Virus record (IMG/VR): IMGVR_UViG_3300031963_000004 | Span: 1 to 64,000 of that record | Strand: one strand, 5' to 3' | DNA length: 64,000 nt | Shown: in pieces, positions 23,682-27,178 of the stretch | Position numbering within the stretch: position 1 is the first letter of the stretch | Layout: every line of letters starts with the position of its first letter | Translations under genes and position numbers: made by a program | The notes under the pieces: model-generated | Told to the model about the DNA's origin: nothing | Seen by the model: only the letters and a program-made list of their open reading frames with translations | Database searches by the model: none

Positions 23682-23971
23682 ACTTCTACAAACTCGGCAT
23701 CTTCTACAAGTTTAGGGGATTCCCATCCATTTAATTGGTCAAGGTCTTCAAATAACTTTGGATATATTGGTCTATAATAAGTATCTAATCTATCCCAATC
23801 TTTATCCATTACTTGACCATCAACAAAACATCTTTCAATTTTTCTATATCTAAAATCAAAAATAATATTCGCTGTGGCAAGTGCATTACTATTTAAATTA
23901 TTTCGCACTGATGCCTGTTCATCAACCTTGCCGTTGCGCTGTTTGTAAAATGTAATTAATAAGTATCTCAA
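23666..23971 (-). CDS. Hypothetical protein (~101 aa)
   Basis: Likely TTG start at 23971 overlapping clamp-loader stop (track start 24004 lies inside that gene). Confidence 0.65.
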   Translation of the reverse strand: MRYLLITFYKQRNGKVDEQASVRNNLNSNALATANIIFDFRYRKIERCFVDGQVMDKDWDRLDTYYRPIYPKLFEDLDQLNGWESPKLVEDAEFVEVKEGN

Positions 23972-24891
23972 TTTGTTAACTCCGCTAGAGTTGCTGCTAA
24001 ACATATTTCTGGTATGCCAACTAGTGATAAGTTAGCAAGACCATTTCGTATAATAATGATTGCTCTGTCTTTCTGTTCGTTTGATTCGCCCCATAATGAC
24101 AGATTGTTGTACATCCATTTGTAAGTATCTTCAATTCTAGTTGGATGACTTTGTAGATAGTGCATCAACTGTTGTCTACCCTCTAATACTTTTCCTTGTT
24201 TAAATAATGTAGCTGCGTCAACAAGCAAATCATTTTCACTTACACCTACACTAGCATAGGGCAATAGTTTACCTGTACTACTGTTCACTTGCAATTGATT
24301 TAGACATTTACGTAAATCAGGGTAAGATACACGAACATAGTTGTCTAATTCTTCAATATCAAACTCTACATTTTCACTAAGCAGTACTGTTGCTGCACGT
24401 GCCGTAAATTCCGAATGATCTGTTTTACTAATATGAAATTCGTGACAACGACTTTTTAATGCAGGAATAATCTTGTGCTGATAGTTACAAGTCAGTACGA
24501 ATCTAACAGTTTGATGATATGCTTCCATATCATTACGCAATGCTGCTTGACCTGCAGGGGTCAGATAATCAGCCTCATCTAACAACACAATTTTGTATTT
24601 ACCAAAGGGCATCGTTTGCACAAAGCCGATGATTTTATTTCTAACTACATCAACACTATTTTCACGACTAGCATTGATTTCTAGTACATCATAGGTTTCG
24701 ATTTCAAGTTCGTTGATAAGAACTTTAGCAAGTGTTGTTTTACCTGTACCAGGATCGCCACTTAGTAACAAGTGAGGTATACTACCTTCTTGTACCCAGC
24801 CCTCTACTTGATGCTTTTGTCTTTCATCAGCAAAGACATATTCTTCAAGACTTTTAGGTCTGTATTTTTCTACCCAAAGTTGATTCTTCAT
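23968..24891 (-). CDS. Sliding clamp loader subunit (RFC small subunit / T4 gp44-like)
   Basis: LWVEKYRP, GDPGTGKT, EINAS, LLDEAD, SRC motif (ALKSRC), DLRKCLNQLQ. Confidence 0.92.
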   Translation of the reverse strand: MKNQLWVEKYRPKSLEEYVFADERQKHQVEGWVQEGSIPHLLLSGDPGTGKTTLAKVLINELEIETYDVLEINASRENSVDVVRNKIIGFVQTMPFGKYKIVLLDEADYLTPAGQAALRNDMEAYHQTVRFVLTCNYQHKIIPALKSRCHEFHISKTDHSEFTARAATVLLSENVEFDIEELDNYVRVSYPDLRKCLNQLQVNSSTGKLLPYASVGVSENDLLVDAATLFKQGKVLEGRQQLMHYLQSHPTRIEDTYKWMYNNLSLWGESNEQKDRAIIIIRNGLANLSLVGIPEICLAATLAELTN

Positions 24892-25217
24892 TTTTTCAAC
24901 ATTTCTAATGTGATTATTTTACCCAATGCATCTCCTAAATCTTCTCCGCTAGGTATAATATGCAAAACTTTTCTAGGATAGTTAACTTGTATTGAACTAG
25001 GGTTATAGTCATTCATAGTCATTTCTAAAACATGACCACCTGTTGCAGGGTACAATGTAAAATTTAATGATGATGTTTCAATACTTCTTGTGCTATACAC
25101 TTTGCTGCTACTAATAGCTTGCCCATATTGGGGTTCAACCTCATCTCTTTCTACCTGTGCGCTGTTCCATGCTTCTATAGACCATTGCTTAAATTTTTTC
25201 TTTAACCATTTCTTCAT
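24888..25217 (-). CDS. Hypothetical protein (109 aa)
   Basis: ORF overlapping clamp-loader start (ATGA). Confidence 0.7.
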   Translation of the reverse strand: MKKWLKKKFKQWSIEAWNSAQVERDEVEPQYGQAISSSKVYSTRSIETSSLNFTLYPATGGHVLEMTMNDYNPSSIQVNYPRKVLHIIPSGEDLGDALGKIITLEMLKK

Positions 25218-25579
25218 TAGATGACCTTATTGCTCATAGTTTCGTCTTGTACAGGAGTATCGCTAATTAATAGAATATCATTTGGGTCTACTCTACGAAT
25301 AGTTTTTTCTCCCTGCTCATCTTCTATTTTAATACCTCTGCTCCAACGACCGTGAGCAATTAGGATATATTGACCAATTTTTACTGATTCTTGTTCTGGA
25401 CCTATAGCATATACTTTAGCCCATCTTGGTCTGATACCAGAATTTTTCATATCATCATTTGGAATAATGATGCCACTATGTGTGATTCTTTCATCAAAGA
25501 CCATATCGGATACGATAATGTTATCTCGTATGGCTCTAAGTTCAGTTACTTTATGAGGTTGGTAAGCAAATTCTTCCAT
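25217..25579 (-). CDS. groES: GroES-like co-chaperonin
   Basis: LRAIRDNIIV, THSGIIIP mobile loop, KVYAIGP, VKIGQYIL, DILLI. Confidence 0.8.
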   Translation of the reverse strand: MEEFAYQPHKVTELRAIRDNIIVSDMVFDERITHSGIIIPNDDMKNSGIRPRWAKVYAIGPEQESVKIGQYILIAHGRWSRGIKIEDEQGEKTIRRVDPNDILLISDTPVQDETMSNKVI

Positions 25580-25585
25580 AATTGA

Positions 25586-25614
25586 ATTATATAATTAAAA
25601 AGTTAAATTGTAAA
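25586..25614 (-). promoter_or_regulatory. Sigma70-like promoter for groES-clamp loader operon
   Basis: TTTACA-17 nt-TATAAT, 6 nt before ATG. Confidence 0.7.
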
Positions 25615-25623
25615 GCTTTTTGG

Positions 25624-25980
25624 TTACTGTTTATCAGTATCTTGATCCGCATCTTCTTCAAGTTGTTCGAATTGTCTTTCTAGTTCGGTCAACTCATTTA
25701 AGTCAATGTTTGTTGGTGGGGGCGCAACTGGCTCCATTGGAGCAGCTACTGGTTGTGCAGCAACAGCAGGTGTAATATCATTTATCATTGTTCTGGATAT
25801 AGTTTTGTTGTAAACTCTGTTAATTCTTTCATTACCATTATCTACAACTCTGTTTGATGGATCCAAAACATCACCCCTAGCATTAACGTTCATGTTACCC
25901 ACTGCTCTTACATTTTCATTTTTAGCTGCTAATGATGACATATCTAGTTGTCTGCCCATTGCTGTATATTGTTTGCTCAT
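25624..25980 (-). CDS. Hypothetical protein (118 aa)
   Basis: AGGAG RBS; VRAVGNMNVNARGD motif. Confidence 0.75.
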   Translation of the reverse strand: MSKQYTAMGRQLDMSSLAAKNENVRAVGNMNVNARGDVLDPSNRVVDNGNERINRVYNKTISRTMINDITPAVAAQPVAAPMEPVAPPPTNIDLNELTELERQFEQLEEDADQDTDKQ

Positions 25981-26018: not shown

Positions 26019-26525
26019 TTATTTTAAAAATTCGTCTATGGGCAGATCATAGTAGAGAGAATTTATCTTATGTACTCCTAGTAAATATAAGACAAAGCTA
26101 GCTACACTACTGCCCCTACCCACTCCCCAAACTACTTTATGTTTACGCATTGTGTCTACAAGATATTTTAAGTACCTAAGCAACATGAACATATCTCGTT
26201 CCTGATATAGTATTAACTCTTCTCCGGCACGTTGTAATTCTGCTTGGTCTTTACATTGATCTAGAATAAATTTAGCTATGTCAAAGTCTTTGTATTCTTC
26301 GGGCATAAACCAAACGTTCTGGTTTTGTCTGTCAAATTCTGATATATCTATTTGTGGATCAATGTACTGAATAAGATTTGGTAAATTCTTTATTTCCAAA
26401 TCTTCTGGAAAGATTATATTGTTCTCTACTACTGCGTGTTTAATGGAAACGTTAGCGTCAGACATATACAGTTCGCATACGTCATCCTCAGATAATATTT
26501 GATTGCCATAAATGTCGTTTCGCAT
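26019..26525 (-). CDS. DNA polymerase III alpha (DnaE)-like fragment, 168 aa
   Basis: WGVGRGSSVASFVLYLLGVHKINSLYYDLPIDEFLK matches DnaE [35 protein letters not shown]; ends before the PDxDxD motif. Confidence 0.75.
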   Translation of the reverse strand: MRNDIYGNQILSEDDVCELYMSDANVSIKHAVVENNIIFPEDLEIKNLPNLIQYIDPQIDISEFDRQNQNVWFMPEEYKDFDIAKFILDQCKDQAELQRAGEELILYQERDMFMLLRYLKYLVDTMRKHKVVWGVGRGSSVASFVLYLLGVHKINSLYYDLPIDEFLK

Positions 26526-26531
26526 CTAACA

Positions 26532-26560
26532 ATTATATACTATTTTTTCAAATAGTGCAA
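26532..26560 (-). promoter_or_regulatory. Sigma70-like promoter for DnaE fragment
   Basis: TTGCAC-17 nt-TATAAT, 6 nt before ATG. Confidence 0.75.
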
Positions 26561-26563
26561 TAA

Positions 26564-27178
26564 TCATTTATCCGTTTTTGTATCAAAATTGGCGAAAACA
26601 ACTTCACTAACTGTGTTTGGTGTAGCTTCAATTGGGTCTGTCCATGTAAGATACAACTCTTCCCAACTATATGGACTCTTTTTTAATTTAACTACTTTCT
26701 TAGATTTATTTGGTTTTACTAAGTTAGACATTCTTAACGAATTCTCATGCCACCATCCATTATTTTTAAATGGTCCTGTATTTTCTTCAATACTATGATG
26801 ATATGCGACACCATCACTCATTTTGGATGTGATGGTTATATCAGTTGCTACTAATCTACCCTCAGATATTGAATTTAGTTTAGTCATCAACATAATGCCA
26901 ATGATCTGATCATATGGTTCTTTGGGTAAGGTACATACCTTTATGTCAGCATCGTGATATTTTTGAATGGATTCTGTCTCACTCTCATCAATAAAAATAG
27001 AATTTTCTAAACAAAAATCTAAAAAGTATTTGATTCTTTCCAATGCTATATTTTGTTCTCGTATAGATTCTGTTTCTATATCAAAATCAATAGCAGTATG
27101 GTAAGTGTTTATTGAGAAAGTATTGTGGAAATGTACGCCTGTTTGAAAACTGAAACTTTTGCTAACTCTAGCTGTCAT
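26564..27178 (-). CDS. Hypothetical protein (204 aa)
   Basis: Long ORF coupled to upstream gene (ATGA). Confidence 0.75.
   Translation of the reverse strand: MTARVSKSFSFQTGVHFHNTFSINTYHTAIDFDIETESIREQNIALERIKYFLDFCLENSIFIDESETESIQKYHDADIKVCTLPKEPYDQIIGIMLMTKLNSISEGRLVATDITITSKMSDGVAYHHSIEENTGPFKNNGWWHENSLRMSNLVKPNKSKKVVKLKKSPYSWEELYLTWTDPIEATPNTVSEVVFANFDTKTDK

Follow-up and report, generated by a model that had tools for sequence, protein, structure and literature searches.

The window analysed here, a stretch of 64,000 nucleotides (positions 1 to 64,000 of IMG/VR virus record IMGVR_UViG_3300031963_000004), contains a short gene resembling DnaE, the alpha subunit of DNA polymerase III (Pol III), as far as the nucleotide-binding motif and ending just before the place of the catalytic aspartates. 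The question raised by this locus is whether such a fragment is a genuine gene and, if it is, where the rest of the active site lies. A preliminary description made from the letters of the DNA had offered two readings: half of a polymerase encoded by two genes, with the other gene starting near PDIDID elsewhere in the genome, or a DnaE-derived inhibitor or regulator. The source is an uncultivated jumbo phage with a genome of ~360-370 kb, for which the present contig is 63% complete.

Results

The window encodes the first part of a C-family palm

According to the ORF list and its translation, the fragment (here called the N-half) is intact, as first described, running from an ATG to a TAA and encoding 168 aa with the C-terminus ...LPIDEFLK. 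Its sole Pfam match at E values up to 1 was PF07733 (DNA_pol3_alpha; the Pol III alpha NTPase domain), in which N-half residues 95-167 corresponded to positions 22-94 of the 260-position profile (E 1.1e-8; 35.5 bits, with a cut-off of 23.9), and no further match to PF07733 was present elsewhere in the 223-kb record. Several DnaE models of NCBIfam matched the same stretch. Among phage protein families, the N-half matched phrog_11127 (E 3.8e-41), reaching the end of the 171-position profile, and also positions 365-430 of phrog_405, a full-length phage DnaE family. Profile alignment by hhalign placed residues 122-167 on residues 347-392 of E. coli DnaE, so that the N-half reaches as far as the position of E. 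coli residue 393, eight residues short of catalytic D401. Megablast of the region against phage records gave no match.

An AF2 model of residues 62-168 was compared with 48,161 chains by VIA-align. The top seven were all C-family polymerases (Z 10.3 to 6.2), led by 5lew (Z 10.3, rmsd 2.6 Å, 93 residues aligned) and including E. coli 5m1s (Z 8.9 over chain residues 275-393); the first unrelated chain followed at Z 3.1. Foldseek likewise ranked Pol III alpha top, but with an E value of only ~0.1, VIA-align giving the clearer result. The likeness to DnaE from the palm helices through R-G-S-S was thus borne out by domain profile, profile alignment and fold. In an alignment of 25 homologues, R137-G138-S139-S140 (the GS motif) is invariant within W-G-V-G-R-G-S-S. 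Residues 1-61 occupy the position of the DnaE PHP domain; they were modelled by AF2 with a pLDDT of 74-85, and several of them contact the partner in the predicted complex described below. Matches found by tblastn in cultured phages mostly begin at residue 50-68. The DNA downstream of the N-half belongs to a separate gene, as had been stated beforehand.

Table 1. Features of the two genes and their surroundings. Positions are those of the window unless marked as outside it; E. coli residues are those of DnaE (Pol III alpha).
Feature	Position	Strand	E. coli counterpart	Evidence
N-half gene, N-terminal nucleotide-binding subunit of a putative split minimal Pol III alpha-like polymerase	26019..26525	-		ORF, PF07733, phrog_11127, homologues, dN/dS
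First part of C-family palm, N-half residues 62-168	26022..26342	-	275-393	VIA-align, hhalign
GS (nucleotide-binding) motif R137-G138-S139-S140	26106..26117	-	R362-G363-S364	alignment, hhalign
Variable N-terminal extension, N-half residues 1-61, small strands and one helix	26343..26525	-		outside Pfam match
Sigma-70-like promoter candidate TTGCAC-17-TATAAT	26532..26560	-		read from sequence, layout kept in relatives
Conserved downstream neighbours: 118-aa protein (phrog_14844), GroES-like co-chaperonin, 109-aa protein, RFC-type clamp-loader ATPase	23968..25980	-		Pfam and PHROG scans
118-aa gene (phrog_14844), directly downstream of N-half	25624-25980	-		unrelated to DnaE
GroES-like co-chaperonin	25217-25579	-		PF00166 E 2.9e-6; phrog_931 'head morphogenesis'
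C-half gene, 193 aa (outside window)	G000:C1:72932-73513	-		motif scan and ORF list
C-half D6, D8, D10			D401, D403, D405	collinear motif map
C-half R-K-H-x-T-G			G-K-H-A-G-G at 509	collinear motif map
C-half K69-L-D71 (third Asp)			K553-F-D555	collinear motif map
C-half R139-P-G			R639-P-G	collinear motif map
C-half G164-Y-x-F-K-K-x-H171			G753-Y-G-F-N-K-S-H760	collinear motif map
Rv2179c-like DEDD 3'-5' exonuclease (outside window)	G000:C1:73510-74067 (= L005:5511-6068)	-		PF16473 E 6.1e-31

The N-half is conserved as a separate gene

A word search in which 8,000 candidates were scored found N-half homologues in at least 7,995 clusters at E values of 0.001 or below. Lengths in the 120 clusters listed ranged from 148 to 178 aa and were mostly exactly 168 aa. 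The C-terminus reads E-F-[LI]-K in every one of the 25 aligned homologues, the most distant of which is 53% identical, and hardly any variation is seen across the final 50 residues of the same alignment. An identical protein is also encoded on a contig of 369,578 bases, and comparison with a relative whose protein is 92% identical gave a dN/dS of 0.050 at a dS of ~1.0. Separate orthologues of ~170 aa are present in the cultured jumbo phages PA5oct, the RaK2/121Q/PBECO4 group, Atu_ph07 and SCTP-2, as well as in Salmonella phage 7t3 and Erwinia phage Hallingskeid. Judged from these comparisons, the N-half is a real, conserved stand-alone gene and no pseudogene.

The catalytic aspartates lie on a second gene

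A scan of the whole record for the motif D-x-D-x-[DE] was performed in search of an ORF starting near PDxDxD, and such an ORF was found as a 193-aa gene (the C-half) on the same strand, 46 kb from the N-half and preceding it in strand order. It begins, at a GTG codon, with V-K-F-N-S-D-I-D-I-D-F-G-D-R-D, only five residues ahead of D-I-D-I-D-F. The C-half occurs at more than 534 IMG/VR loci, and in the 80 loci kept it starts (at ATG or GTG) a few residues before D-I-D-I-D-F. Its dN/dS was 0.076 at a dS of ~1, so that both genes are under strong purifying selection. An upstream 204-aa gene (26564-27178) with D-F-D-I-E was also considered as the partner and rejected, the hhalign probability to the C-half family being 0.15% and no Pfam or PHROG match being obtained.

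The C-half matched phrog_11778 (E 3.1e-53) and, weakly, positions 774-809 of the full-length DnaE family phrog_405. No Pfam match was obtained at E values up to 1, and NCBIfam yielded a chance match only; against PDB sequences, neither phmmer nor a 23-sequence profile found a match, and hhalign against the single E. coli sequence gave a low probability of 15-17%. Foldseek with the C-half monomer returned only noise, which is attributable to the poor modelling of the first 73 residues when the chain is folded alone. With AF2 residues 66-193, VIA-align found PolC (Z 8.3), M. tuberculosis DnaE1 (7.8) and E. coli Pol III alpha (7.4, chain residues 554-787); C-family polymerases alone occupied the range from Z 8.3 to 5.7, and the next chain followed at Z 4.0. 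The homology of the C-half to DnaE therefore rests on the PHROG matches, the fold and a series of motifs collinear with those of the E. coli enzyme (Table 1). The three catalytic Asp residues, which are not on the N-half polypeptide, are found here as D6, D8 and D71, all invariant. R139, P140, Y165, F167 and H171 are also invariant, and G141 is Gly, Ala or Ser in the 23 homologues. Past the last conserved helix, the alignment shows a variable acidic tail (for example in the loci L044, L048, L052 and L087), which in some relatives ends in repeats like T-A-F-x-x-A-[FL]-T and in the present copy is short, with E-S-G-H-S-T-N; such tails might include a peptide that binds the clamp.

Two genes of this kind could also be halves joined by a split intein, or the N-half ORF could be a pseudogene, or else what an assembly error or frameshift has left of a longer gene. 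A precedent for the split intein, credited to Caspi et al. (2003), is known from cyanobacteria, where DnaE is naturally split and carries trans-splicing inteins. Here, however, the N-half is DnaE-like to its last residue (E-F-L-K), in agreement with the earlier remark that no intein motif is visible, and the C-half has only five residues before the Asp pair, so that the ends leave no room for intein halves. A frameshift or intron is excluded, as the C-half precedes the N-half in strand order and 46 kb of other genes separate the two. Against an artefact also stands the near-constant length and ends of the N-half across independent assemblies (more than 7,900 clusters, with lengths from the 120 listed and ends from the 25 aligned), and against a pseudogene its dN/dS of 0.05. 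The probability left to this group of explanations is negligible. A full-length gene in relatives, the lack of a partner and the lack of purifying selection, any of which would speak against a split polymerase, were each looked for, and none was found.

The two halves occur together and are predicted to bind

In phage records, the N-half was found in 103 and the C-half in 96. By genus, the two halves were counted equally often: 34 times in Escherichia, 11 in Pseudomonas, 8 in Erwinia, 8 in Salmonella, 4 in Xanthomonas and 4 in Yersinia. The surplus N-half records, among the matches listed, are weak matches to ordinary DnaE of Cellulophaga, Enterococcus and Thomasclavelia phages. Of five C-half-bearing IMG/VR records tested, four had the N-half too, the two records with a completeness rating of 100% among them, and in those four metagenomic records the halves lie ~37-44 kb apart. 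Both halves are likewise present, tens of kb apart, in the cultured jumbo phages PA5oct, RaK2-like phages and Atu_ph07; the distance is 43 kb in PA5oct, where the pair is gp196 and gp264, and 33 kb in 7t3.

Modelling of the pair as a complex, proposed earlier as a check, gave an ipSAE of 0.90 (0.91, 0.90 and 0.90 in the individual runs), compared with 0.00 for the best of three controls; of 80 solved complexes, 58 attained this ipSAE mark, as did 2 of 110 mismatched pairs, counts that apply only roughly here because our own alignments were used. Contact agreement among the runs was at least 96% and the partner pLDDT at least 89. The tightest predicted contacts join N-half residues 133-134, in the GS strand, with C-half residues 9-11, in the D-x-D strand, and this is, in the model, the pairing expected of a Pol-beta-like palm. 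When the chains were folded alone by AF2, the palm part of the C-half (residues 1-73) and the GS loop of the N-half were of low confidence, which fits a mutual dependence of the two chains in the predicted complex, folded with a different predictor. The complex score may in part reflect the model's memory of single-chain DnaE structures. Overall, the complex prediction supports binding of the halves to each other. With a partner gene identified, the co-occurrence of the two, purifying selection on both and the predicted complex, the first reading of the preliminary description, one half of a two-gene polymerase with its partner elsewhere, was supported.

The second reading, in which the N-half alone would be a DnaE-derived decoy, inhibitor or regulator that binds, for example, a host Pol III partner or nucleotides, would suit a small gene with its own promoter-like element, far from any partner gene. 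Beyond these features nothing was found in its favour. The known partner-binding regions of DnaE (the PHP/epsilon site, the beta motif and the tau-binding C-terminus) are absent from the N-half, the most conserved part of which is instead the catalytic GS strand, and it is exactly this strand that is buried in the predicted interface. Since the N-half also co-occurs with the C-half, a decoy or inhibitor is considered very improbable.

Most of the nucleotide pocket is kept, and the thumb is lost

In ternary complexes of E. coli Pol III, the residues within 4 Å of the incoming dGTP or the templating base are R362/G363/S364, D401/D403, Y754, F756, N757, H760, R639-P640-G641 and R390; H760 is the steric gate against rNTPs, K553A abolishes polymerase activity, and R390A, which alters a residue within 4 Å of dGTP, cuts catalytic efficiency 27-fold (bioRxiv 10.64898/2026.06.29.735100). 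Of these pocket residues and K553, the phage halves keep all but N757 and R390, and almost all of those kept are invariant. The place of R390 is taken by an invariant Glu, E165 of the N-half (26022-26030, minus strand), and that of N757 by an invariant Lys, K168 of the C-half. Both substitutions count against a polymerase, and they could compensate for each other across the interface of the two subunits.

Larger parts are missing as well. The C-half passes directly from the helix following D-x-D (E. coli ~427) to the G-K-H-A motif (509), from which it follows that the thumb (E. coli ~430-508) is absent, as is the greater part of the index finger, where R709, K714 and K715 are located. The thumb holds the duplex in all solved C-family polymerases, so that its absence also counts against a polymerase. 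No PHP, beta-clamp-binding, OB or C-terminal domain is found in either half, and the 361 aa of the two together are too short for the remaining DnaE domains.

These losses could instead point to an active nucleotidyltransferase other than a templated DNA polymerase, in which the C-family core has been re-used; it might act as a terminal transferase, work without a primer, synthesise RNA or produce a nucleotide signal. Such an enzyme would be compatible with the lack of thumb, clamp-binding, OB and PHP domains, the much reduced index finger and the invariant Glu and Lys at the places of R390 and N757, and the phage group already owns a complete family B polymerase. The pocket for the nascent base pair is nevertheless invariant, comprising R-P-G at the templating base, the stacking Tyr, the Phe and the rNTP-excluding His, and both genes are located within replication modules. 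An enzyme of this other kind is therefore judged unlikely.

Genomic surroundings and a promoter-like element

The order N-half, small protein, GroES-like protein, small protein and RFC-type clamp loader is also found in PA5oct, 7t3, Hallingskeid and metagenomic relatives. The GroES-like gene lies two genes downstream of the N-half, before the clamp loader, in the present genome, PA5oct and RaK2-like phages. The C-half is two genes away from a primase and a DnaB-like helicase. A family B polymerase was sought on this contig, which is 63% complete, with no match to PF00136 or PF03104; both complete relatives encode one of 916-929 aa, ~30 kb beyond the N-half. Its absence here is probably due to the incompleteness of the contig, since its place would fall off the left end.

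A DEDD 3'-5' exonuclease gene overlaps the GTG start of the C-half by 4 nt. Among related IMG/VR loci, the exonuclease is upstream on the same strand in 75 of 80 and abuts the C-half in 48. It may be a lineage-specific proofreading partner or a mere neighbour. A role as a universal third subunit was rejected, because PA5oct and 7t3 have a gene for a zinc-finger protein before the C-half, and because the exonuclease family is common in small phages.

The N-half had been credited with its own near-consensus promoter, and this claim held in part. A TATAAT (26537-26532), separated by a 17-nt spacer from TTGCAC (26560-26555), lies within the 38-nt intergenic spacer (26526-26563), and the same layout recurs upstream of the N-half orthologue in the loci L007, L008, L013 and L094-L097 despite divergence of the spacer. 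The -35 hexamer, on the other hand, matches the consensus at only three of six positions, for which reason a consensus scan did not list the candidate. The -10 hexamer is 6 nt from the ATG, so this candidate would give a leaderless or nearly leaderless mRNA. The layout (TTGnnn, 16-18 nt, TAnnnT, 5-7 nt, ATG), which leaves no space for a Shine-Dalgarno leader, is found at 7 of 217 ORF starts, compared with 55 of 8,146 ATGs overall, and is thus ~5-fold enriched in this genome. The other starts that show it on this contig (G000:C1) are 20989(-), 64340(-), 71677(-), 74067(-), 76890(-) and 159996(+), and the seven ORFs include the N-half, the primase and the exonuclease upstream of the C-half. PA5oct has been reported to use TTGAC/TATAATA promoters. 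The occurrence of a promoter layout directly at start codons suggests leaderless early transcripts.

Discussion

Our results indicate that the N-half is probably one of two subunits, the N-terminal one, of a minimal C-family (Pol III alpha/DnaE-like) polymerase, of a type that is typical of RaK2/PA5oct/Atu_ph07-like ('group 2.2') jumbo phages. From the homology, conservation, co-occurrence and predicted interface presented above, we infer assembly, catalysis and role as follows. The N-half would provide the palm helices and the R-G-S-S strand, which holds the incoming dNTP by its sugar and phosphates. From the C-half would come the two metal-binding Asp residues (D6, D8), the third Asp on its K-L-D strand (K69, D71) and pared-down fingers consisting of R-P-G and the Tyr/Phe/His pocket (Y165, F167, H171). 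Since neither half contains intein sequence, the association would have to be non-covalent, with the GS strand of one chain pairing with the D-x-D strand of the other to complete the palm sheet. The resulting enzyme would have 361 residues, and the PHP domain, the thumb, the clamp-binding region and the OB domain would all be missing. Because the steric-gate His is invariant and both genes belong to replication modules, it would probably be a DNA-templated dNTP polymerase that works beside the family B polymerase of the phage in repair, primer extension or the synthesis of one strand.

A "split minimal Pol III alpha" of group 2.2 jumbo phages has been described from sequence (Iyer et al., Viruses 2021;13:63; PMC7824862). 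It consists of a ~170-aa N-unit with the NTP-binding motif and a ~195-aa C-unit that binds Mg and template, encoded by distant genes with a clamp loader and a primase with helicase as neighbours; the present pair agrees with it in all of these respects and in phage group. The PHROG families of that system, 11127 and 11778, were both matched here. Nothing essential differs, the local features of the present locus being the exonuclease overlap, the GTG start and the promoter-like element. The locus is thus another member of an already described split polymerase, and what the preliminary description deduced from raw sequence was correct and already published. Beyond the account of Iyer et al., the present work gives the coordinates of the partner, maps the residues to the E. 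coli ternary complex of the 2026 preprint, and adds the size of the family, estimates of selection and the controlled complex prediction. A literature search, extending past 2021, found no experimental work on the split enzyme.

With bacterial Pol III alpha (E. coli DnaE, Taq, M. tuberculosis DnaE1) and PolC, the pair shares the Pol-beta-like palm with R-G-S, the Asp triad and the K553 equivalent, as well as R-P-G and the helix-loop-helix pocket with Tyr, Phe and His, at fold Z scores of 6-10. It differs in being made of two chains, of 168 and 193 aa, rather than one of 1,160 aa, in lacking the PHP, thumb, beta-binding, OB and tau-binding domains together with most of the index finger, and in having Glu and Lys in the places of R390 and N757. 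Cyanobacterial split DnaE is also encoded by two distant genes, but there the products carry intein halves and end as one spliced chain, and the split is at another position, in the fingers. A closer parallel in position is offered by gp038 and gp039 of Cellulophaga phage phi13:1 (L108:2568-6168), in which DnaE is broken at the same point, between F-E-R-F-L-N and P-D-I-D-x-D-F. Unlike the genes described here, these two are adjacent, 1 nt apart, and encode 525 and 673 aa, including a PHP region and complete fingers; ~50 aa follow the break in the first product, and ~20 aa precede the Asp pair in the second. The N-half also weakly matched phrog_13169 and phrog_7513 (~460 positions, the GS region being close to the C-terminus), and these matches, together with phi13:1, hint that this break point in DnaE recurs.

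A more elaborate possibility, which we regard as tentative and rather doubtful, is that a second small replicase is assembled on demand from at least three small proteins, namely the split mini-polymerase core and the DEDD exonuclease acting as epsilon. The catalytic half would then be translationally coupled to the exonuclease in this environmental lineage, and the nucleotide-binding half would come from a separate, possibly leaderless transcript beside the clamp loader, so that activity would arise only once both modules were expressed. Such a replicase might perform primer extension or gap filling for the family B replisome. If this were true, the phage would possess a working thumbless C-family polymerase and a hybrid replisome of bacterial and archaeo-eukaryotic type.

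For the simpler two-subunit polymerase that we favour, we know of no C-family polymerase smaller than the 361-residue heterodimer, if it is active. In an active heterodimer, two chains would share one active site in nature, and this would help to find out what catalysis requires of Pol III alpha. Such an enzyme could also serve as a model for an ancestral form, a proposal made by Iyer et al. (PMC7824862). Members of the family abound in environmental jumbo phages, with thousands of clusters, and are also present in the cultured PA5oct and RaK2-like phages.
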